From positions 10,540,001-10,604,000 of the forward strand of contig OZ176052.1 in assembly GCA_964247055.1 (NCBI GenBank): a stretch of DNA of 64,000 nt, read 5' to 3'. Numbering within the stretch: the stretch's first letter is position 1; the number at the start of each line of letters is the position of its first letter. Below the pieces are notes generated by a model. The model made no database searches. It had not been told where the DNA came from and saw only the letters and a list, made by a program, of their open reading frames with translations. Positions 15,193-60,362 of the stretch are shown one piece after another. A program made the position numbers and the translations under genes. The stretch is from Paragordius varius (taxonomy: Eukaryota; Animalia; Nematomorpha).

Positions 15193-17245
15193 GCTGCAAT
15201 AATATTGCAAAATGTATATTTATTTAGAACGTGACATCAAATAAAGATGTGACCTTGACCAAAATATACATCAGATTATTTGAAAAACTATGGGTTTATT
15301 TGCCGATGCTTTTAACTGTGAGAATTTAAGATATATCTTTTAACCTTGATCAAATTGGACATTATTTGATATGTTAATTGTTGGGAAATACGCTTTTGTA
15401 AATTAAAATCAGTGGCGGAGCGAACATTTTAGACCGGGTAAATATATACCATTTGGACTTAAAGAGTATTCTTGAACACTTAAAGTTGGTCCTTCAACAC
15501 TTTTATTTTGTTTTTAATTTATATTAAACAAATGTGTTTTATCATCATTTATTTTATCATATTTAACCTGTTCTCATTATATAAAAATTATAAAATCTAT
15601 AAAACTTTTATTATTTAGAAAATGTATTTCTTTATAAATTTTTTGAAATATAAATATTAATAAGAATTAGCACATAGAAAAATATATAACTGGGTTATTG
15701 GGGAAAAAATTTTTTCGAAACAAATGATTTGGTTTTTAAATGTGAAATATCAAATTTAAATGAATAATTATACAATAGTTAAAGAAATGGTTAAAAAATA
15801 ATAAAATTAAAAAAATACATGCAAAAATTATGGTTCAAGCTTAAAAATTTAAAACCCAACTTGTGTACAATTAACTTGAAGTGTTTAATGAAACTCTTGA
15901 AATACAAATGGTATTTTACAATACTTCCTTCATCTAAATATGCCGTTAAAAACATACCTAACAGGTTCTGAGACACGATTATTACCGGATATCATATTAA
16001 TATTTGATTGAAAACAGAAAGCTATTTATATACAACGTTTTCCAAAGTGAAAATAATAAGGCAAGAGAATTGATAAGTTGATTATAACATTAACAACTAA
16101 TTCAATGTTCATTCAGAAACTTTTACGGTATTATGTGTGAATCTACGAACCTGAACTATTCTCAACCTTTTAGATGGCATTATACTTATTATCAAAAATA
16201 ATTTTTTCAGGTCTCAAGAAAAAACATTATCATATTTTTATGTTTAGAAGAAATCAGAAAATCGCTTCCATTTGATGCTATAATATATTCGATTAAATGG
16301 TTACCTTATTTCATTGTATATAAAATGTTTTTAACGAAATCATTTTTTGAAACTAATGTTTTCTGAATTCATAACGACAATAATCAAAAATGACGTTGTC
16401 GTTATAAAATCGAAGTGGACCGAAACCTCTCTTTTTAATCTGCCATAACAAACGCTAGTGATACTATGACACTTTATACCATGGCTTACATAATCAGTAA
16501 TATTTTTAAAGTACCATAATAGAAAATATTTGTCTGTTCAATATAAAAATCTTTTTAATCCATTTGGTTTAAAAGGTTACTACTTGTATCTAACACTGTT
16601 TTTATCCTCCCTATTTCAGCAATACTCAAATTCAGAATCAAGAGCTAATATTTTTTTTATTACGTTTTAAAGATAGAGTTTTGATATATTATTGTAAGGT
16701 TTATGAACTATATAGTTCCGTTAAAAAAGCTTTCGCTTTAAGAAATATGTAGTAAATATATTTTAAACCTTAGAATATCGGTATAATGTTACATTTAGTT
16801 TTAACATAATAGGTAAAAAAATTAGACATTTTGCTTAACAATTATTTAAAAAATTGACACTTAAATGTCCTTAAATTTTATTAGAAGCGAAGTTGCAAAA
16901 TGATTATAAACAAAAGGATGATTTTACAAATGTTCACAAATAAGTAACAAATTCAACTGATACCTTTTTTATTGTGCAAATATTTTGTTTTACCAACTAA
17001 TGTAATAAGAAAATATGATTTGATTTTTTAAATATGAAACCAGACCATATCTCTTTTTATAAAGGAAAACTTGCATTTTATCCTATATAGCTAAGGTGAC
17101 CAGATTTTTGGAAGGAAAAAGCGGGACAAATCTGATAGGGGGGGAGGGGTCATTGGGGGGTACAAATGAAAAATTTTCTACAAAAAATTTATTGTAATAT
17201 TTATTTATTTTTAACACAAATACATTATAAATATAAAAAAAATTG

Positions 17246-18067
17246 TACCTTACAGGTTGTTTGTACCTTATTCAATAAATTTACATGTGCACGAACAAAG
17301 GGTGAAGGGATTTTAATATTCTAGAAAAAAATAATAAAGACGAAATCATCACAAAGTGCGCTGGGTGATGCAAGAAGCGGCACAAAAAATATTTTTAGCG
17401 AATAATCTTAATCAAAACATTATTGGCAGATACACAACGCTATTTAAACAGCTACTGATTTGTTATCCCTGGATGTGGAAAATATAGATGTTAAAATGCT
17501 TGGATATTGTAGAACTGTTGGTTAGCTCTTTTGCCAGAGATTGAAATATTTATAAAAATGTGATCTCCTAGAACCCTATTTTTTATCACAGGACAAAGGT
17601 CAAAATTCCAAGATAAAAAAGGTTAGAAAATAATTTCATACCATTACCTAATCGCAATATTATAAAGCATCTAGAAAAACAAGGGTCAATGAATAGCCAG
17701 CTTTTAAAAATGTTTTATACAAACAGAAACGAATATTTAGAAGACAAGACGGTGCACAATGACACTTTTTTATGAAGTCTCATTATTAAATAAATATATT
17801 GACTGAAAACTTATATTATGGACAGCAGAAAAAAATACGTAGGATAGAAATGGTTAAAATAATCATTTTTAAACAAATTATCACAATAATATTTTAATTG
17901 TAGAATTTGCATTTCTTCACCTGAACCACTGCTATTGAACGCGTTTTTCCACAGTGAATTAAGTAAGGACACGGAATCAAATTTAAATGTTGAATAAAAG
18001 CCATTTGATGTGTTCAAATATAATATGTCAAATTATGAAGACTTATACAAGATTTTAAGTAATTTTG
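17246..18067 (+). repeat. Inverted, deletion-riddled copy of the element's own transposase gene (pairs with ~18160-19650)
   Basis: Plus-strand blocks match the transposase sense strand colinearly, e.g. TTACATGTGCACGAACAAAGG, AATCTTAATCAAAACATTATTGGC, ATGCTTGGATATTGTA, TTTTATCACAGGACAAA, GGTTAGAAAATAATTTCATACCATTA, AAAAATGTTTTATACAAAC, CGCGTTTTTCCACAGT, AATCAAATTTAAATGTTGAA. Confidence 0.92.
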
Positions 18068-18110
18068 TTTATTTTTTAACATAAAAACTTTATAAATATA
18101 AGAAAATGTT

Positions 18111-19967
18111 TTATTCTTTGGGATATTTTTTGTTTGAGTGAATGCGTTTTAGCAGATTGTCATAATTTTTTAAAATATTGTAGAAGTCTTCACAAGAATT
18201 TGTCAAATTATATTTGACAGATAAAACGGCATTTAAAGTTTCAACATTTAAATTTGATTTTTCCGATGTCCACACCTGATTTACTGTGGAAAAAACGCGC
18301 TCAGTAGCAGCGTTGGTTCCAGGTAAAGATAGTGCGAATTTCACAATTTTTAAAATATTATTGTATGTAATATAGTTGGCTTCAAAATGATGAAATATTT
18401 CCAACCATTTCTTTTCTACTGTATATTTTTCATTTGTCCATAATTTAAGTTTTTTATTATTAATATATCTTTTAACTAATGATACTTCAGAAAAAAGATC
18501 ATTTTCTGAAAGATTACTTTTTGAGAATTTTTGGGAGCAGATATAATCAAATGATTTTTGAACATCGCACCAATTAAATTCTGGTTTTAATGTTATCCAA
18601 TGAAAATGATCAATTTCATTGAATTGCGTCGTCCAGTCTTCCAAATAATCTTTACAGTTTGTATAAAACATTTTTATATGGTACAGGACATCTTGGCGAT
18701 TTATTAAGCCTTGTTTTTCTAAATTATTTATTATATTGCGGATGGTTAATGGTATAAAATTATTTTCTAACCGTTCTTGACATTAGAATTTTAGGTTACT
18801 AACTTCATTGGCTACTTCGATTGCCGAAATTTTGTCACTTTCTATCAATTTAATAACATTTTGAAAGAGAGAAGCTTGATTATGTAAAAATTCTAACCAT
18901 ATTTTTGAAGAATCACTTTCAAAAATCTTTTTTAAAGTTGTAGGACATTTGTCCTGTGATAAAAAAGATTTTAAAGGATATACATTTTAAAAAAAAATAT
19001 AGCTGGCATAAACGCTAACCAACGAGTTTTACAATATCCAAGCATTTTTTGATATTGAACTTCTGCATTTTCACAGAATTTTTTAAGCGTTTCAACACGT
19101 ACCGTGTATATATAAAAATAGGAATATATTTTAACAACTACATTTTCCACATCTAGGGGTAACAAATCAGCAGCTGTTTGAATAGCGTTGTGTATTATAT
19201 GCGCTGCACACCCAACGCCAATAATGTTTTGATTAAGATTATCTGTTAATTTATGAAAAATATTTTTTGTTCCCCCCCCCCCTTGCTTTTCCACCAAAGT
19301 TCGTATTGGTGTTGTCAGCGCAATATGCGATAATTTTGTCTTTTAAATTATTTTTTTCTATATATATGCATTATTGATGTAAATATTATTTCGGAATTTT
19401 CACCGGGTAGAGAAATTAAATCTAAATTTTTTTTTACTCCGGTTTCTGAATCAAAATATTTTATTAAAGTGGGAAATAATTTTGTTTCATAGTGATTTGA
19501 TGCATCAGAGTATAGGGATAAGAAATTAATTTTCAGCAAATTTTTTTGTATTACAGAAAATGCATGTGGCGAAATGACATTGCACACAATGGCTTCAGCC
19601 TTTGTACGGGCACATGTAATAACGTGCAAATAATCTGTGAGGTACAGTCCATAGATCTATAAGAATGATTTTGATTAACGGCGTGAAAAGATAACACGCC
19701 CTCAGCTAGTGCCAAATTCTTTTCTTCCTCTCCAAAAGCGGTTTTTCGAAAAAAATCGCTCATTTTGTAAGATGATGCCGCCATATCTAAACATTTTTTA
19801 TGTTTCTGTGTTTCCATATGTGTAATATCATGCTTGCCGCCATGTGCTAGGGTGAATTCCCCCTCGCATAAAGAACATATAACAAATGATTCATTCTTCG
19901 TTTTTTTGATAAAAGGAAAATCTTTCATTAATTCATCGTTGAATTTACAACCTCTTTTTGTGCTCAT
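18111..19967 (-). pseudogene. hAT transposase, disrupted
   Basis: N-terminal zinc-finger-like CSLC..HGGKHDITHMETQKH, catalytic-region YCADNTNTNFG, GCAAHIIHN (CxxH), KTRWLA and C-terminal PGTNAATERVFS. Split over four ORFs by frameshifts (~19620, ~19360, G11 run at ~19272, ~19000) plus an in-frame TAA near 18790. Confidence 0.93.
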
Positions 19968-19980
19968 ATTTATAAACTAC

Positions 19981-20250
19981 TATTAGTATAATAAATATTA
20001 TATTACCTTAATTTTCTGGAATAAACGGGTAAGGTACCGATTTGTGGTATCAATTTGTCTTTTAAGCTACCGATTTATGGTATTAATTCGGCTTTTTAAT
20101 AATGTTGGCAAGTATAAAACTAAAATATTAGTATGATAAATATTATATTACCTTAATTTTCTGGAATAAACGTGTAAGGTACCGATTTGTGGTATCAATT
20201 TGTCTTTTAATCTAGAGATTTGTGGTATTAACTTGGCTTTTTGATAATGA
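19981..20250. repeat. Two-copy direct tandem duplication (period 146 bp) upstream of the transposase ATG
   Basis: TATTAGTAT(A/G)ATAAATATTATATTACCTTAATTTTCTGGAATAAACG(G/T)GTAAGGTACCGATTTGTGGTATCAATTTGTCTTTTAA starts at 19981 and again at 20127. Confidence 0.9.
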
Positions 20251-21759
20251 TGACAGTTAGGAAGGAAAGTGTCTAATTATATGATATAAATTCGAAAAAA
20301 TTAATATTTTTAATTTTAAAATAAAAAATTTTAATTTAAAATTTATATAGATTTTAAAGATATTTAATGATAAAAAAATTAAACGGATAAAAAAAATTTA
20401 TTTGTATTAAAAAAAAATTTTTTTATATAATCGTGAAAAAGCGGGACATTTTAAAAACGTAGCGGGACGCGGGACAAAGTGTGAAAAAGCGGGACTGTCC
20501 CGCCAAAAGCGGGACGTCTGGTCACCTTATATATAGCCAACATTTGGGCATCATATGAGAGTAGCAAATAATTTATTTCTAAAAGTTGCGATCTTTTTTG
20601 GGATTTTACAATTTCAATATTTAATTAGTAATGTACTTTAATTAATATTTATAAAGTTTTATTTTTCGAATTGCATTGCACATAAATCGAACCCTGGTTG
20701 ATAAATGTATAGGATTATCATGGTGCTTTTGGTTTCGGGGCATACGAGCGATGTAAGTTTTCACTTTTGTGGTTAGTGCCCTATAATAGCAAAGTCAAAG
20801 CACATTTTTTGGAAAGCTACTGCTTTCCAAAAAATATCATTGAAATATATGATATATTCTAGTTAAAAAGCAATACAATATTTTTATAAAATTTTAAAAT
20901 GTGGGCTGAGTCACAAATTTATGTCCATTCCCTCTAAAATGGATTAGATTTCTTAAAAAAACGCAATAATGTGTGATTTAAATTTTTTAAAATATATGCT
21001 AGATTATGACATCAACAAAAGGGTTCAAATATTTTAGCAATTTTTTTTGAAGTCCTTACTATTATACATGGAATTATCATTTTATGATATTATAAAAACA
21101 ATTTTCTATTAAATTGGATGATGCTTAACATTTCTATTACCATAATTTTGAATTAAATATTCGTTTGTTTTTAAATTTATACTAGATATAAATAGTTACA
21201 AAATTTACCACTTAAACCCGTGTTATATAAATAAAGTGTTTATATAAAATCGAAAAAAGTTTTTTCACAACCTTTCCACCGTGCCTCAAAATATCATAAA
21301 ACTCGTTTTACCATATTTACCATAAATTAAATTTTTGAGCAAATATTCATTTTTTTGGATTTGTCAAAATATAGCATTGATTAAAAAAATTTGATCGCGC
21401 AAAAACAGCCTTTATTTTAAAAGAACTGGCCTATTTTGGATGATGAGGCTTTCGGGGCTTAAAAATTTATTAAAATATATTGTTTTGTCTATTATATGTT
21501 TATAGAATGAAGTATTTATCTTTCAAATTTTTTTAGCAAAACGTACGCAAACTTTGCTTGTTATTCAGCACTTACCACAAAAGTGGTATTAACCTTCATA
21601 TCTCACTCGTAATTAAAATCAAAAGCACCATGAGAATCCTGATAATATTCGGGATATTATTTTGTTAACATATGTTAAGCTCTCTTTTATTACAATAAGA
21701 ATAAGAATATTTGTTATTAAAAGAACCCAACATAATTTAGATAGAGTATAAAATGAAAT

Positions 21760-24700
21760 ATAATAATAATAATAATAATTACATTATATGATATCACTCT
21801 TTCGAGCGGTCATATCCGTAAACTATTTTGCCATAGAACCCTGTCTAAGGCGTCTTCGCGTTTTAGGTTCAGTTTTGCCATTTCCTCTTAACTGTATCTA
21901 TCCATCGCGTTTTAGGGCGCCCTTTTCCCCTCTTGCCTTTTACAATATAATCATCAATCTTTTTACCAATGTAATTTTTATCTCTTCTTTCAACATGTCC
22001 AAACCATCTTAAACGATTTACCATCATCTTTTGCGTTACCGATTTGATTTCCGTACTTCCTCTTATGTAGACATTCTTCACCTTGTCTTTCCTCGTTACA
22101 CCGCACATCAATCTAAGCATTCTCATTTCAGTAACCTAAAAAGTGCCTCTCTTCTGATTTCTTTATTGCCCATGTCTGTGAGTTGTACATCATTGTTGGT
22201 TGTACAACAGCACTGTAAATCTTACCCTTTACTTTTAGGTCAATATTTTTGTCGCACAAAACACTTGAGATCTTTTTGTAATTTGCCCAACTATTTCGAA
22301 TTCTTAAATTAATTTCAAGTGTTAAAGATCCATCAGCTGCTAATATCGCTCCTAAATATTTGCATTCTTCCTGACCTTTTAATACCCACCCTTCTTCTAA
22401 TTCTATTTCTCGTTTTTTCCCGCCAAAATTTATCAGTTCCGTTTTCTTTTTGTTAACTTTTAATCCGCATCGTCGTAACACATCAATCCATTTACCCACC
22501 GATTCTTTTAATTCATGCAACTCGTCGGACAGCACTATTAGGTCGTCTGCATAAAGAAAATACCAGCCATCATGTTGTCCTACTTCTTTTGAAATTTCGT
22601 CCATGCATATTATAAATAATAACGGGCTGATTGCAGACCCCTGATAGACCTCTTCGTTTATTTTAATAGGACCTGATATTCCCTGGTGTGTTTTAATTTT
22701 GGTTTGGTGTGATTCGTACATGCTTTTTAAAATCTTTATGTAACTTTCAGGGACCTTTTTCCGTCTTAAGCTCCACCATATTGTGCTCCGAGGTATTCTG
22801 TCAAATGCCTTTTCAATATCAATACAAATACCATGCAACTCCTTTTTCATTTCTATATGCTTCTCGATTAGCCTTCTTACTGCGTGAATTGGATCAATGG
22901 TGGATTTTCCTGGAATAAAACCAAATTGATTACCCTCTATACTAACCATTTTTCTTATTCTTTTCTCTAGTACTTTCTCAAATAACTTCATTGTATGCGA
23001 CATCAATCTTATCCCTCTGTAATTATTACAATCATTAATATCTCCTTTACCCTTGAAAATGGGAACAGTGAAACTCTCCTTCCATTCGGTTGGTATCATA
23101 CCTGTAGTAACTACATTATTAAAAATATCCGCTAAAAATTCAATACCTTTCTCTGACAATATTTTCCAACAGTTTATGTTAATATCGTCTGGACCTGCAG
23201 CCTTATTTATTGACATCTCTTCTAAACTAGCCTGGACTTCTTCTTTTGTTATACTTTCAATATGCGCAGAATTATAATCTGGTGTTTCGGGTAAACTTGT
23301 TTCACTGACGCCCAATTCAAGATCCTGGAAATATTCTTTCCACCTTTTCAATATTTTCGCTTCCTCAACGAGTAATTTGCCTTTTTTATCTTTAATAGCT
23401 GTCGCGTAAGGGGGCAGGTCCAGCTTTCTTCTGTGTCTTAGTCGAGCAATTTTAACTTTGTTTAGACCTTGCTTACTGTTCAACTCTTCATATAATGATG
23501 CCGTCTTTTCTTTTTTGACTAATCTTACAAGCCTTTTAAGTTCCTTATTAATCCTTTTATATTTTTCCTTGTCTTCTGCTTGGTGGGTAAACCTCCACAT
23601 TTTAAAAGCTTTTCTTTTCTCTCGCGATTTCAGAATTATTTTTTCGTCTTTCAGCCATGCCTCTCTATAAACCTGGTTTCTGCCACCTTTCATTCCGCAC
23701 ACCTTAACTCCCGCCTCTCATTTTTTTTGCCACCTGAGACCAAACACTTTCTGGATCACTGTTCCTGTCTAGTATGCCTACCGTTTCTACAAATCTTTCT
23801 TTAATGTTTCTTAGAGAACCCATTTAATTACCTTCGGCGCTATAAGCTTAGGCTTTTTGGCATTTATTGGCATATCTGTCATATATTTACACATAATTAA
23901 ATTGTGTTGTGTGCTAATCTGCAAGTTAGGTATCACTTTGCAGTCCAAAACAAACTTTAAAGACTTTCGTGGCACTAGAATATAATCAATTTGTGACTTC
24001 TTATTTCCACTTTCGTAGGTAATTAAATGGCTATCCCTTTTCGTAAAAAAAGTATTTGTTATAGCAAAGTTATAAGATTGGGCAAATAATAAACTAGCCC
24101 CTTCTTCATTTATAACCCCGTAACCTTTTCCGCCGTGCCAAGGCTCAAAACCTCTCCTATTTTGTCCCACGTGCCCGTTGAAATCACCACAAAATATAAT
24201 TTCTCTGTCTTTCGTTAATGAAGTCATTTCTGCGTCTAACAAATCATAGAATTTATCTTTCTCCGGTTTAGTTAAACCTATCTGGGGGGCATAAACGCTA
24301 AAGATAGTAAAAACCCTCTTATTTAACAATACGTCGACACTTATTATTCTACTGTCAGCACGTCTAACCTCAATTACTTGATTGGCAAATCTTGGGCACA
24401 CTATTATGGCAACCCCACAGTAACCATCCGTAGAACCTGAATAAAACATTTTATAATTACCCTCTAACGTCTTAGTACCATTTCCACGGTATCTGGTCTC
24501 CTGAATGCACAAAAAATTTACTTTTTTTACCCTCATAGTTTCAACTAAATCATATAACTTACTTTTTAACGAACCAACATTTATACTGGCAAAACACATT
24601 CTACAACCTTCCTTATCCCTAGTGGCCCCTACCTCCGTGCAGCGACTGGCCGGGTCTGGCCTGCACGCCTTACAAAAAACACTCATAAAAAACAAAAATA

Positions 24701-37300: not shown

Positions 37301-40300
37301 AATTTAAATGAACGTCAAATAGAAAATCGTAAAGTGACTAGTGAAATCATGCTTATTATCCTCACAAATTATTTTTGCATTAAATTAATGCGCGTGATGA
37401 GAAATGGCTTTTTTTGAAAATTTAAAGCGGAAAAATCGTGGCTTTCATCTTGCCAAGCCGTAATAAGGCCAAATCGCTTTGGTAAGTAAACCCTGCTGTG
37501 TGCCTTGAAAGCCCCGTAAACTTGTTAATACACAACAAACTATGGCTGGCAAATCCTAATTAAAACCATCATTATTCAAAGAAAACATGAAAAAAAAAGA
37601 TTCTGATATATGATAATGATTTGTCTCGTACAATAAAAAAAGTAAAAGACACCTAAAACCATTTCGATGCAAATTTATTCCGCACTTGCTGAATTCTCCT
37701 GAGCCATCTGACTAAAACAACCTCGCAAAAATAACCCTCGCAGCGCAGCACTCAACTAATTTCCAAGACGTTGGAATATTGGACGAATGGTTTGCCGCAG
37801 AAATCAAATATGTTACGAGAAGATGAGCAAAATGTGTAGAAGCCGGTGTATAATAATTAAAATAAAAAATTGATTTCCCATCAAAATTACATGTATTTTT
37901 ACCAAAAAAAACCCGTAAAAACTTATTCATACACCTGGTATATAAATTTTTATATATTGATTTATACTTATAGTGTGTGGATATGTAAGGAAGTCTAAAA
38001 GCCAATAATTCCAACAAGGAATACAAAATTGACCAAGACTGGCATTTTGTAACAGTAGGTAATAGATGATCTAAAATATCAAATATATTAGTAAAACTTT
38101 CTCTATAATTTAATAATTGAAATAATTTACTTATGAATCCTTTGATTCCAAGCGATTCTGTTTCCATGTAAGCCAAAAGTCTCGCATATGTTTCAAGTAT
38201 GGCGGATGTTATACGGTTTAACCGATTTTGTGATGAAATTTTGATGATAGTCCCGGCAATGTTGTGTATCAGACTTGACAATATAATTATAAAATCAATA
38301 ATTAGGTTTATTTAAAAAGTTAGTAAGGGTAAAATTATTGTATTAACAATATTAAATCATTAGCCAAATGTTATGTTAGAAAAAGAATATTAACACCACA
38401 TGATAAAATCAACAGTCACACCTATTACCTCATTTTAGTGTGCACATTAAGGACGTCCAAAAAATCCATTGAGAGTGGTTCTAAATTCCCAGTGCTAGCA
38501 CCCAATGAGGTGTTGGTTTGTTTGAGAGCATATGGTGTTGGATTAGATCCTCGTACAAGATATTCCATAATAGCTGATATCAAAAGGTGGAAACGTTCTG
38601 CCGAAAAACTATAAGCATTACAAAGGATAGGGTAAACAGGGTTAAAAGTCAATTGTTCATTGGATTCAATTGATTTGTTAGCAGTATTAGGGATTGACGC
38701 AACGTATGGTTTGGATGACACATCAATGTACAATGAGTTGACTGTTAGTAAATACGTTTTATCATTACCAGGAAGTGTTACAGTCAAAATTTGATTGCCA
38801 TCTCCCAAGCCCTTTTCAGGACCTGTTGATGTGTTAAACAGTGTGAGTTGATTCGCAAACTTAGATTCAAGATCAGTGATGAAAGCATATTGAGTGGTAA
38901 AAGCAAATGGCATTGGCCATTTCATTATATTGGTATCGAGCGTCGTTTGTGCATCATTGATTTCATTTAATTTTGTGGGAGTGATTTTTTCAACATTCAT
39001 ATTAGTTGTTGTGGATAAGCTCTTGAGTTTTTTGGAAACGTTCATCCATAAACTAAGTCCAGAAAATTGTATGACACAATCATTCATTTGCATGGTAGGA
39101 GTGTTTGGGCGCGACAGTGTGGTGGTAATATCTTCTGCCAACTTCGTGTCACTTGTGTGTTGGAGACCCCCACTCCAATAGCTCAAAGAAATCTGATCTG
39201 GAACCTTTAATGGTATATTTAAAGTTATCGTCGTATTATGTTGGGGATGATATTTTGCATTAGCATACATAGCACTTTCTGGAAAAAGAATGTCAAAAAG
39301 TGTTATTATATGCGTATAATCAAGGCTAGATGATTGCACATTTTGCAGGTTTGCTGAAACGATTTGCAACAAGAGCCAAGCTAAATTATGACGCGTTTGA
39401 CCAAAACATTGTATGGCAATGATTGATTCTTGCATAGTATGCAAAAAATGATCGCCTCGTCTTATAACAGTTATATTTTCTTCCACTTGGTCCTTGATAT
39501 GCGCTTTGATTAAACGAATCAAAGCATCTAATATACCATACAATGAACAAAAGTGAAATAGGATTAGAAAAATAATTTGGGACGCTAGGTGTTGCCATAC
39601 ATTTAATTTGTTCAAATCAACTATCATTGTGGATGGGGAAAATGATGATGTATTATTGCTTTGACCAGGAATGAGTAAATCAAATAGGATGTGAGCTAAA
39701 ACATCCTCCAAAATTTGGCAACGAATCTTTTGCTATAGAGATGAAAGTTTTATGTGCTAAAGGTGTTTTTGCAATTTTTTGATTTCATTTAAATTATGTA
39801 AATTTTATGAGATAAAAAGTTATTTTCCTATTAAAAAATTAACAAAATGTATAAGGGTTTAAACAATTACTTATACATTGGATACGAGATAGTTACCAAT
39901 AACAGCTTAATTACTATTTATTTAAATTTTCAAATTCCTTTATTCAACGCCATTATATTTTGTTTTTTAATAAACCGAATATAATTTCATATTATTTGGT
40001 AATTTTATTTAAATTATAAATCGTAGGGGTTTCAAATTTTTTAAATTAAACTGAGTCATTAATTTGTAGTTTATAGATGTATGTTTTTCACGCTATCCCT
40101 GTCAAATAAATCCTTAACCCTAAATCACTTAAAACCTCATTTTCCAAATGGGCCAAGTAGCTTATTAAAAATTCGATGGTTTTTGAAAAATAAAATAAAA
40201 TAAATGTGTTAATTTTGTCATCAGAACATTGGATGATTTATAGAAAATCTATTGGTTTAAACTTTGAAATTTTTTGCGCTAAATTATATAATTCTATTGG

Positions 40301-57755: not shown

Positions 57756-60362
57756 ACAAATGGTAGAAAAACCACAAAATAATTTGACAACAAATATTAC
57801 ACAATCCTCCAAAAATGAAGGTATATTTTAGATATATTTATTAACAAAATTAAAATATTTGATTTTTCGCATTGAATAATTTGACCTTAACCTTTTTTGC
57901 ATGACATGTATTGTTTTATTTAACAAATTATGAAAATATCTTTAAAGATTAAATATTTGAATTACATATTATAAATATGTAATCAATTTTATTATATTTA
58001 AAATTTATGTGCCCTGAATCTACGGAAGTGATAACTTAAAATCATCAATAATAATATTTAAAACCACACTCTTAACGCTTGATTAAACGTAACTTAATGC
58101 CTATATTTATATTTAATATCAATTAATTAATTGATACCATATTATCAATATTTCGATAACAATTTTTTTTGCTAATATATTCAATCATTTAAATATTTTT
58201 TTAAAAGGTGGTAATTACAATAAAAACATGAAATTAAAACCAAATGACGATGTGCAAGCACGGATTTTGGATAATCGGAAAAGAGATATTAAAGTAAGGT
58301 TTTTTTTAATAAATATACATCAACATATATTAACTTAATATGGTAATTTAAATTTTTTATTGAATTGATTATGTCAATCGTCGATTTCTATAAAATAATT
58401 AATAAACGAAAATCAAAACGAAAGTAAAGAATAAACTTAAACTGAACTTGAAATAGATGAAAATATTTAGTGATATGTTACAGACCCCCTTGTTCGATAG
58501 TAATTGTCGACAGCATTCAAAACTTTTTAACTTAAGTGTTTTTATATCATCATCAATATATATTCAACATTATTTTTTTGGTTTAATTGTGAAAAATACG
58601 AAATTAAATTAATATTAAAAATTAAATGGAAAATATAGTATATACTTAGGTATTTAACCTATATCAAGAGATGTATTTCGGGGGACACCCATTTTATTTG
58701 ATATTTGAATTATTGTTATAAACAGTATAAATATATTGGTTTTACTAATGTTAATCATATTTAACACTATTTAAGCACTGCCAGTACCATAAATCTTAAC
58801 TTTATTGGCGCAAAAATCATTATTTTTTTAGATAAAGCTTCATAAAAATGAGTTTTTAAGTTTTCCATTTGATAAAAAAATATGCTTATATACCATATAT
58901 TTAATAGACGACTTACGATCCCAACACAAACGTTTGCCATGAGAAATCCAACTCTTTTGTCTCTACAAGTTCCGGCGTTGAAACAGGTGGGGGAAGTGAG
59001 GATTCTGAATATTCTTATCATTACTGGAAGCCTGGGCAAACATCTAAATTACTCGGTCAAAATTTGGGTAATGATATTGATCTGTCAAACTTTAAAGTGA
59101 AATCTAGCGATAGCTTAAATGATAAGGCATTAAATAAATTAAATGCCAATAAAAACAATATAGGAGGCGGTACCTTACAATATTTGGATGTTATACCAAT
59201 CGCTAATAAAAGCGAATATATCAATTTACCATCAAATGGTGACTCTGTAAGTTTTGCTTATGATGATCTTTCAAGAAAGACGCCCAAAATTAATGGTCGT
59301 CTTGATCAAACAATACCTTTAAGCCCTGGCTCATCAACCCTTGATAAAAACTTAATTGACAATTATATTAAGTCACAAAATTTATCGCAAGTTGTTTCAC
59401 AAAAGAAATTAAAGACACCACATACCAACGTTGGGAAAGGTAAAAATACCAATAGGTATTCTATAATGAATGGTACACAGCAGGAGATGGTAACTGAACT
59501 TGTAAAAGACTCCAAATTTTATAGTACTAAAATATCAACAAATCATAAAAGGGATAATTATAAGAATAAAGGATTTTATGATAATGTTCAACCGACTATC
59601 TTAATCAAATCCACATCCTTCCCAAACTCACCGATTAGAGGAAGGGAACAGAAGAATTGCAATAACAAACAAAAAAATGTTTTAATTCTTGATTTCCACG
59701 GTTGGGTCAAACGGGTACTCAAAAAAAGTTTTTCTGCCCAAAAAATCCCCGGTGAAAATGACCGATTCAGAGAGCCAAATAATGTTAAAGGTTATTTTTG
59801 TATATATAAGCTTTTCAATAATTTATGGAAGATGGTTTATTATTTTATACGTCTTAATTTTGACATAGATTTTCTATATTTTGTTAATTTTAATTGTATT
59901 TTTACTATAGCTGGACAAAATCACTATGTAACTGGGCATCAAAGCAAAAAATGTCCAAAACAGTCTTGTACATACTCTCAGAATCTTAATACATCTCTCA
60001 TGTCAGAAAATAGCGAAAATGGTATAAAGGGTCCCAAATCTAGAATACGGCTTGTGAAATCCAACAATAAATTATGTTTGGCAACTCGGGTACGTAGACT
60101 GTCTTTAAGTTCAATTATTCCATTCGCCAAAAATAGTTTTGCTGAAAATTCCAATATTAATAATACATATGACAGACGAAATATAAAAAATGATATAACT
60201 GCAGATAATGCAGTGGGTGAAAAAAATAAACACAATGTGTTTTCGGTTCATTCAAAAGTACCATCTGAGCTCATATACCGTATAATGGGTCGATTCTCAT
60301 ACCACGAAATAGATATGGCTAAAACGGAAGCGCTTAGGATATTATCTCAACATAATTTGTAA
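57756..60362 (+). CDS. Unrecognised multi-exon gene encoding an N/K/S-rich, probably largely disordered protein; 5' end unresolved
   Basis: A long open exon runs from ~58908 through the 432-aa ORF to the stop at 60362, with a probable in-frame intron (~59791-59910, GT..AG, hydrophobic read-through). Small phase-compatible upstream exons lie at ~57756-57819, ~58208-58293 and ~58459-58535. No family recognised. Confidence 0.6.

Follow-up and report, generated by a model that had tools for sequence, protein, structure and literature searches.

A decayed hAT transposon with an inverted copy of its own transposase gene, probably added to the 3′ untranslated region by one aberrant repair event

The DNA analysed here is a 64,000-nucleotide stretch of the Paragordius varius genome (contig OZ176052.1, positions 10,540,001 to 10,604,000; hereafter the window), and it contains, at window positions 17092-20529, a single hAT element in which the stop codon of the transposase gene is followed by an inverted copy of part of that same gene. 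The element carries the hallmarks of the hAT superfamily: short terminal inverted repeats (TIRs), here a perfect 13-bp pair; a perfect 8-bp target-site duplication (TSD), with TATATAGC standing identically on both sides; and a hAT dimerisation domain in the C-terminal part of the transposase. Exact matches to the TIR sequence, TAAGGTGACCAGA, occur twice in the window, once on each strand, and these are the two ends of the element; the same terminus is found in the relatives L014, L032 and L001. An initial annotation, made from the letters of the sequence, had already described a hAT transposon with a perfect TSD and a left terminus that is a distinct 3′-type end, and we arrived at the same description. 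Positions 17092-17240 align with the 3′ untranslated region (UTR) and the terminus of a relative from the corn snake (Pantherophis guttatus; L032).

The transposase gene aligns end to end with homologues of 623-628 amino acids, the closest of which, P0155, is 71.8% identical at the amino acid level. A Pfam search matched Dimer_Tnp_hAT (PF05699) to positions 18111-18671 (E = 9e-8), and the intact relatives P0155, P0007 and P0210 have this domain as well. No Pfam model matched the RNase-H-like DDE core, for which we have only the end-to-end homology to relatives of ~625 amino acids. Translation in three frames revealed at least four frameshifts (~19620, ~19365, ~19280 and ~18990) and an in-frame TAA at 18783-18785. 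With these lesions the element is neither intact nor potentially autonomous, and it is now a dead copy.

The inverted copy, which we call the arm, is colinear with positions 19646-18161 of the coding sequence (CDS). BLASTN aligned the arm with the CDS in five colinear minus-strand matches (17244-17312 with 19646-19588, 17316-17497 with 19367-19128, 17493-17635 with 19048-18911, 17602-17762 with 18792-18616 and 17758-18067 with 18503-18161) at 67-75% identity with gaps, with E-values down to 1e-56, and a repeat finder listed the same arms. In a MAFFT multiple alignment, arm and CDS were 80.6% identical over 818 paired columns. That alignment placed 24 missing segments, 679 nt in total, in the arm (the largest being 217, 152, 119 and 84 nt) and only four, 17 nt in total, in the main copy; 45% of the arm's length has been lost. 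The spacer between the two arms, 18068-18160, is 93 nt long. BLASTN and MAFFT therefore agree with what the initial annotation had reported, namely an antisense copy of the transposase CDS between the stop codon and the 3′ TIR that is colinear, shortened by deletions and separated from the gene by a loop of ~90 nt. Its further statement that the arm is much more decayed than the main open reading frame (ORF) is right in that the arm is the more deleted and the more diverged of the two, but the main ORF is itself a pseudogene.

Several features of the arm bear on its origin. As had been pointed out before, it retains bases that the main ORF has lost: an ancestral segment of ~10 nt at ~19620 and a TTGAA near 19000, both of which also occur in the outgroup L001. 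There are 33 sites at which the arm agrees with the outgroup while the main copy differs. None of the main-copy lesions that could be scored (~19620, ~19365, ~19280, ~19000 and the in-frame TAA) is found in the arm, so the copying took place while the source gene was still intact. In a tree with the outgroups L001, L013 and L014, the arm and the main CDS were sisters with a bootstrap value of 100. This grouping supports an arm that is internal to the element and is an inverted copy of a gene of its own family. An assembly artefact, for example a chimeric palindromic read, has next to no probability. Long-read data are known to contain foldback artefacts, but arms that are only 80.6% identical and differ by 28 indel segments are not what such a read would give, and neither are the outgroup states and the 10-nt segment kept by the arm, nor the diverged UTR duplicates that flank it. 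As a separate observation, the main CDS contains an 11-G homopolymer at 19275-19285, which, compared with the arm and the outgroups, shifts the frame by +4.

On either side of the arm lies one copy of a direct duplication, ~63 nt of 3′ UTR sequence, which was found by both the repeat finder and BLAST. We refer to the copy on the side of the terminus as U and to the copy on the side of the stop codon as U′ (Table 1), so that the order in the sense of the gene is stop codon, U′, antisense CDS, U and 3′ terminus. The corn-snake element, which we reached through the 90%-identity cluster of P0155 because that cluster includes Pantherophis guttatus proteins, has a full 3′ end without an arm, and only 201 nt lie between its stop codon and the end of its TIR. 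Window positions 18071-18110 align with the first ~40 nt of the snake 3′ UTR and positions 17092-17240 with the remainder up to the terminus, and a single stretch of this UTR is matched by U as well as by U′. These alignments, together with the arm-less 3′ end of the snake element, indicate that the 3′ UTR of the ancestral element was short and lacked an arm. L001 ends at its TIR, ~123 nt past the stop codon. Eight copies from Rhopalosiphum padi, and copies from Helicoverpa and Loxostege, extend 160-530 nt past the stop codon, and none of them contains inverted CDS.

Both junctions of the added block contain microhomology. At the junction between arm and U′ (J1) there is an 8-nt inverted microhomology, in which TTCTACAA, at the end of the UTR stretch in U (+ strand, 17176-17183), exactly matches the reverse complement of TTGTAGAA, located within the CDS at 18178-18185, and the copied CDS begins directly beside the TTGTAGAA site. 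We estimated the chance of such an 8-mer at J1 at ~0.03. At the second junction (J2), the trinucleotide TGT is common to the arm and the UTR. Breakpoint microhomology combined with a template in cis, 0.1-1.5 kb away within the same element, fits a template-switch or gap-filling repair product, an assignment that is moderately secure in sequences that have since diverged.

Table 1. Features of the hAT element and of its inverted arm, in window coordinates
Feature	Position	Strand	Basis and remarks
TSD, left copy, TATATAGC	17084-17091	.	direct reading; same as 20530-20537
3′ TIR, TAAGGTGACCAGA	17092-17104	+	exact match; terminus also present in L032 (snake) and at the L001 end
3′ subterminal region	17105-17178	-	one GCGGGAC at 17121-17127 (motif scan) and a G-rich run; homology with the snake element's 3′ end
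U, terminus-side UTR copy	17179-17241	-	three minus-strand AATAAA (17188, 17200, 17204); aligns with snake 3′ UTR
Inverted arm, 824 bp	17244-18067	+	+ strand is the sense of transposase codons ~108-608; heavily deleted, no long ORF
Junction J1 zone, arm/U′	18042-18067	.	bases like antisense CDS (19/25) and like U (17/25)
U′, stop-side UTR copy	18044-18106	-	most of the hairpin loop; minus-strand AATAAA at 18068-18073; aligns with snake 3′ UTR
AATAAA overlapping the stop codon	18110-18115	-	stop at 18111-18113; same GAATAAA arrangement in L001, L013 and snake L032
Transposase pseudogene, ~620 codons	18111-19967	-	three-frame translation, Pfam, homologue alignment
5′ UTR tandem duplication	19981-20255	.	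145-bp period, 92% identity; repeat finder and BLAST
5′ subterminal region	20430-20516	-	six GCGGGAC/GTCCCGC motifs (motif scan)
5′ TIR	20517-20529	-	exact match to TAAGGTGACCAGA
TSD, right copy, TATATAGC	20530-20537	.	direct reading

The U/U′ duplication, the arm-less relatives and the 8-nt inverted microhomology point to a single template switch by snap-back while a break or gap was being repaired, and the ~63-nt direct duplication suggests that the strand folded back on its own molecule. It is probable, in our judgement, that the locus is a dead hAT copy to whose 3′ UTR one aberrant repair event added a block of 865 bp, and that the arm is a decayed and neutral by-product of that event. In the mechanism that we infer for this locus, a strand whose synthesis or resection had passed the end of the gene and reached ~65 nt into the 3′ UTR would snap back at TTGTAGAA/TTCTACAA, and the folded-back end would copy ~1.5 kb of its own gene, or a patchy part of it, in reverse. 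The new strand would then rejoin the normal template just past the stop codon, at the TGT microhomology. The setting could be the repair of a double-strand break or of a gap left by excision, with re-annealing to the partner strand; the overlap of the strands would become the U/U′ duplication, and the product would read stop codon, U′, inverted gene copy, U and 3′ terminus. Template-switch gap filling in animal TIR elements, most of them hAT, is biased towards templates in cis and uses microhomology (PMC8277862).

A different source for the arm would be a separate, older dead copy of the family, which either became joined to this element by nested insertion or tail-to-tail fusion, or served as an ectopic relic from which the repair was templated. 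This could account for an arm that looks 3-4 times older than the main copy, with a longer branch and many more deletions, and in a family that seems prone to horizontal transfer, repeated invasions with different clocks are conceivable. However, no second set of TIRs and no TSD around the arm was found in the window. The arm is bounded instead by the duplicated 3′ UTR, and by microhomology that fits an intramolecular fold-back. A relic from the same genome would, moreover, have the time depth of the main lineage, so that the absence of synonymous change on the main branch would still be unexplained. We regard such an older source as extremely unlikely, and the initial annotation was right to set aside a simple tail-to-tail fusion, since a second pair of TIRs is missing and duplicated 3′ UTR lies on both sides of the arm.

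The arm and the main copy have diverged from their common ancestor to very different degrees. Over all alignment columns the arm branch has a length of 0.22 and the main-copy branch a length of 0.056, and parsimony assigned 95 derived changes to the arm and 33 to the main copy. Rates at codon positions 1, 2 and 3 were 0.225, 0.098 and 0.248 on the arm branch, 0.071, 0.027 and 0.069 on the main-copy branch and 0.115, 0.036 and 0.357 on the selected stem. U′ is likewise more derived than U (13 versus 3), with the proviso that some of U′ may be arm sequence. The contiguous block of arm plus U′ (17244-18106) carries ~3-4 times the substitutions of 18111-19646 and of U (17179-17241). Hypermutation was rejected as the source of the long arm branch, the substitution spectrum being ordinary and strand-symmetric. 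Alignment error was also rejected, as the asymmetry persists in strict columns, those no closer than 6 nt to a gap (45 versus 20; maximum-likelihood lengths 0.19 versus 0.066). Purifying selection on the main copy fared no better, because such selection would still allow synonymous change: on the main branch the rates at third and first codon positions are equal (0.069 versus 0.071), and the third-position rate falls far under the value of at least 0.17 expected for equal age. The codon-position rates, the ordinary spectrum and the lack of an excess of G:U-compatible changes (see below) are best read as neutral decay of the arm.

When the arm arose relative to the last insertion of the element is a separate matter. 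We lean towards an arm that is older than that insertion and was carried in at least one later transposition. Mobility of hAT elements requires only the element ends, so the arm would probably have been carried along. The TIRs and the TSD together give 21 unchanged pairs, and this has P ~0.01 at the 19% divergence of arm and CDS, and P ~0.09 at twice the main-copy rate, should that slower rate be the true neutral one. The claim of the initial annotation that the arm was already part of the unit at its last transposition thus receives weak support: the first value favours it, but the second does not, and the branch asymmetry fits it poorly. It is also possible, if unlikely, that the arm never moved, a normal element having inserted here and its 3′ UTR having broken later and been repaired by snap-back copying. 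Most animal TIR elements that carry filler exist as single copies, produced by gap filling that does not depend on transposition (PMC8277862). A single copy is all that is visible in our window scan and tblastn comparison, and the main branch is short and neutral-looking, so that at twice its length the unchanged TIR/TSD pairs give no rejection. On the other hand, at the divergence of arm and CDS (19.4%) or of U and U′ (18-24%), 21 identical pairs have P ~0.01-0.015, and a one-time event at this locus requires an unexplained faster decay of the arm-plus-U′ block.

Some observations weigh against a single repair event followed by neutral decay. The arm branch is 3-4 times the main branch, yet neither looks constrained, and this is unexplained; a single event with equal neutral decay predicts equal branches, so the model lacks something. 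The asymmetry could come from assembly polishing of a multi-copy repeat, from different clocks after horizontal transfer or from elevated mutation in the arm and loop, and while it stands unexplained it weakens the argument from age that the arm predates the insertion. That timing hangs, in addition, on 21 short TIR/TSD pairs. The microhomologies are read from sequences that are now ~20% diverged, and J1 can be placed only to within 18042-18067. Lastly, the copies with which we compared the arm come from other genomes, and an arm that is family-wide, and possibly functional, is possible.

The initial annotation had proposed that transcripts reading through into the arm would form long double-stranded RNA and let the family limit its own activity. 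In RNA folding of a hypothetical read-through RNA (19967-17092), 680 of the 824 arm nucleotides paired with the cognate CDS, and the minimum free energy was -917 kcal/mol, compared with -565 to -589 kcal/mol when the arm was shuffled. The pairing is distributed over 96 helices, of which only four reach at least 20 bp (the longest being 28, 26, 20, 20 and 19 bp). The hairpin potential of a read-through RNA is thus real in these predictions, long but imperfect, and to that extent the proposal stands. On the minus strand, AATAAA hexamers lie at 18110 and 18068, both ahead of the arm, none occurs within it and three follow just beyond. The initial annotation had noted the hexamer overlapping the stop codon as one that could end transcripts before the arm, as well as those beyond it at ~17188-17209, and we found all of these together with the second one at 18068. 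The hexamer at the stop codon is conserved in three relatives (L001, L013 and L032). The two hexamers ahead of the arm argue against routine read-through, and hairpin RNA could be made only if transcription ran past two poly(A) signals or came in from outside the element.

Selection for pairing left no trace that we could detect. Transitions between arm and CDS divided into 40 that are compatible with G:U pairs and 42 that are not, alongside 77 transversions, so that substitutions do not favour G:U-compatible pairs in the test that the initial annotation had proposed; a scan against Rfam gave no match. A built-in self-silencing function is speculation, and we consider it very unlikely that the arm is a silencing module that transposes with the element as a unit and supplies, through read-through double-stranded RNA, small RNAs that limit the family. 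In its favour are the extensive pairing, with a folding energy far under the shuffled-arm values, an arm free of internal AATAAA with three just beyond it, and the perfect TIRs and TSD next to arms that differ by 19%, by which the arm may predate the insertion. Rearranged inverted copies do silence families in maize and Antirrhinum (PMC3440606; 10.1101/2020.01.07.897926; 10.1101/2024.06.24.600476), and hairpin RNA (hpRNA) loci of flies supply endogenous small interfering RNA (siRNA) pathways (PMC10317233). Against this, two poly(A) signals separate the stop codon from the arm, the one at the stop being conserved; a bias preserving G:U pairs is absent; deletions have removed 45% of the arm and mismatches affect 19% of what is left; the arm is missing from all relatives examined; the gene of this copy is itself dead; and selection acting on an element does not favour a variant that silences its own family. 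The idea that the family limits its own activity found no support here. Very improbable, too, is a mobile 'killer' derivative of the hAT family that spread as a unit to several sites by means of the family transposase and whose read-through or externally driven RNA gives rise to siRNAs or PIWI-interacting RNAs (piRNAs) against the transposase; for such a derivative, the excess decay of arm and loop would be a consequence of targeting by RNA interference (RNAi) or heterochromatin.

Searches for further copies covered collections that do not include the source genome. Within that scope, protein searches with the C-terminal piece or with a profile of all pieces gave no homologue closer than 72% amino acid identity, an exact look-up of the window's 186-amino-acid ORF found no record, and pattern scans of metagenome and genome contigs for the TIR plus GCGGGAC yielded only chance matches in GC-rich prokaryotic sequence that do not resemble the element. 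When relatives were compared with the window by tblastn, this hAT element alone matched. The closest family relative is the corn-snake copy (JAKNRS010000168.1, 3869-6076), which has an intact ORF of 624 amino acids and a GC content of 29.6% inside flanks of 43-53% GC. Its DNA is 97.8% identical to L013, a contig of an unrelated ENA assembly (ERZ504362). The 90% cluster that holds the corn-snake proteins also includes a protein from a coral snake, and the wider family is otherwise mostly from arthropods. This snake-borne hAT family is a candidate for horizontal transfer.

The ends and the neighbourhood of the element provided some additional observations. The first ~40 nt of the 5′ end (20490-20529, comprising the TIR and GCGGGAC/GTCCCGC motifs) are near-identical to positions 31-70 of L014, whose transposase is only 62% identical, and these shared motifs are probably transposase-binding sites under strong constraint. 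The 145-bp-period tandem duplication of the 5′ UTR is not present in the shorter 5′ regions of L013 and L014. In the 3′ subterminal region, the G-rich run spans 17139-17160. The window as a whole is AT-rich animal DNA with 28% GC. A non-LTR retrotransposon lies 1.6 kb from the hAT element, at 22128-24695 on the minus strand, with endonuclease (PF03372) and reverse transcriptase (PF00078) ORFs whose closest proteins found are at most 46% identical. Two long ORFs at 37712-39711 (minus strand) match Mediator subunit 23 (PF11573), which indicates that the window is a eukaryotic, most likely animal, host gene region. At 59064-60362 (plus strand) there is a 432-amino-acid ORF of low complexity, rich in N, K and S, without a Pfam match.

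If the arm is a scar of repair, as we favour, the locus offers a clean natural example of snap-back template switching in an animal hAT element, with both junctions and an arm-less outgroup at hand; it would be useful for annotation and for studies of transposon rearrangement, and unsurprising. To our knowledge, hairpin derivatives that trigger silencing have so far been documented mainly as fixed plant loci. Should copies in the genome turn out to share the arm and to be accompanied by small RNAs, a mobile animal case would reveal how a DNA transposon can first come to be recognised by RNAi.

Compared with known systems, we file the locus as a rearranged hAT copy of a known kind. It resembles Mu killer of maize and the Ac/Ds composite insertions, which are partial inverted duplications of transposase-coding sequence that arose from an aberrant event of the elements themselves and can form kilobase-scale hairpins (PMC3440606; 10.1101/2020.01.07.897926), and Ac, like the element described here, is a hAT transposon. 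The structural feature of those loci, an inverted duplication of transposase-coding sequence, is present here. However, Mu killer and the Ac composite loci are transcribed (Mu killer from a flanking gene), yield siRNAs and silence in trans, whereas the structure at our locus is known from DNA alone; and they are fixed, near-perfect repeats rather than a mobile unit, whereas here the repeat is 80.6% identical, has lost 45% of one arm, and lies inside the TIRs of an element in an animal host. There is also a structural likeness to the Tam3 Stabiliser loci (10.1101/2024.06.24.600476). Like Pack-TIRs and the products of abortive gap repair, the element is an ordinary hAT copy with extra DNA, a template within a few kilobases and microhomology at the breakpoints (PMC8277862); unlike Pack-TIRs, its filler is its own CDS in reverse, not a fragment of a host gene, and it is accompanied by the ~63-nt direct duplication. 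The hpRNA loci of Drosophila share the long inverted repeat with a short loop, which if transcribed could be a substrate of Dicer-2 (PMC10317233), but they produce abundant 21-nt siRNAs from highly paired stems, whereas the pairing here is interrupted and predicted. Finally, large inverted repeats within a DNA transposon are typical of Foldback (FB) and Galileo-type elements; in those the inverted repeats are the termini, and in the present element the termini are 13-bp TIRs and the repeat is internal, asymmetric and coding.

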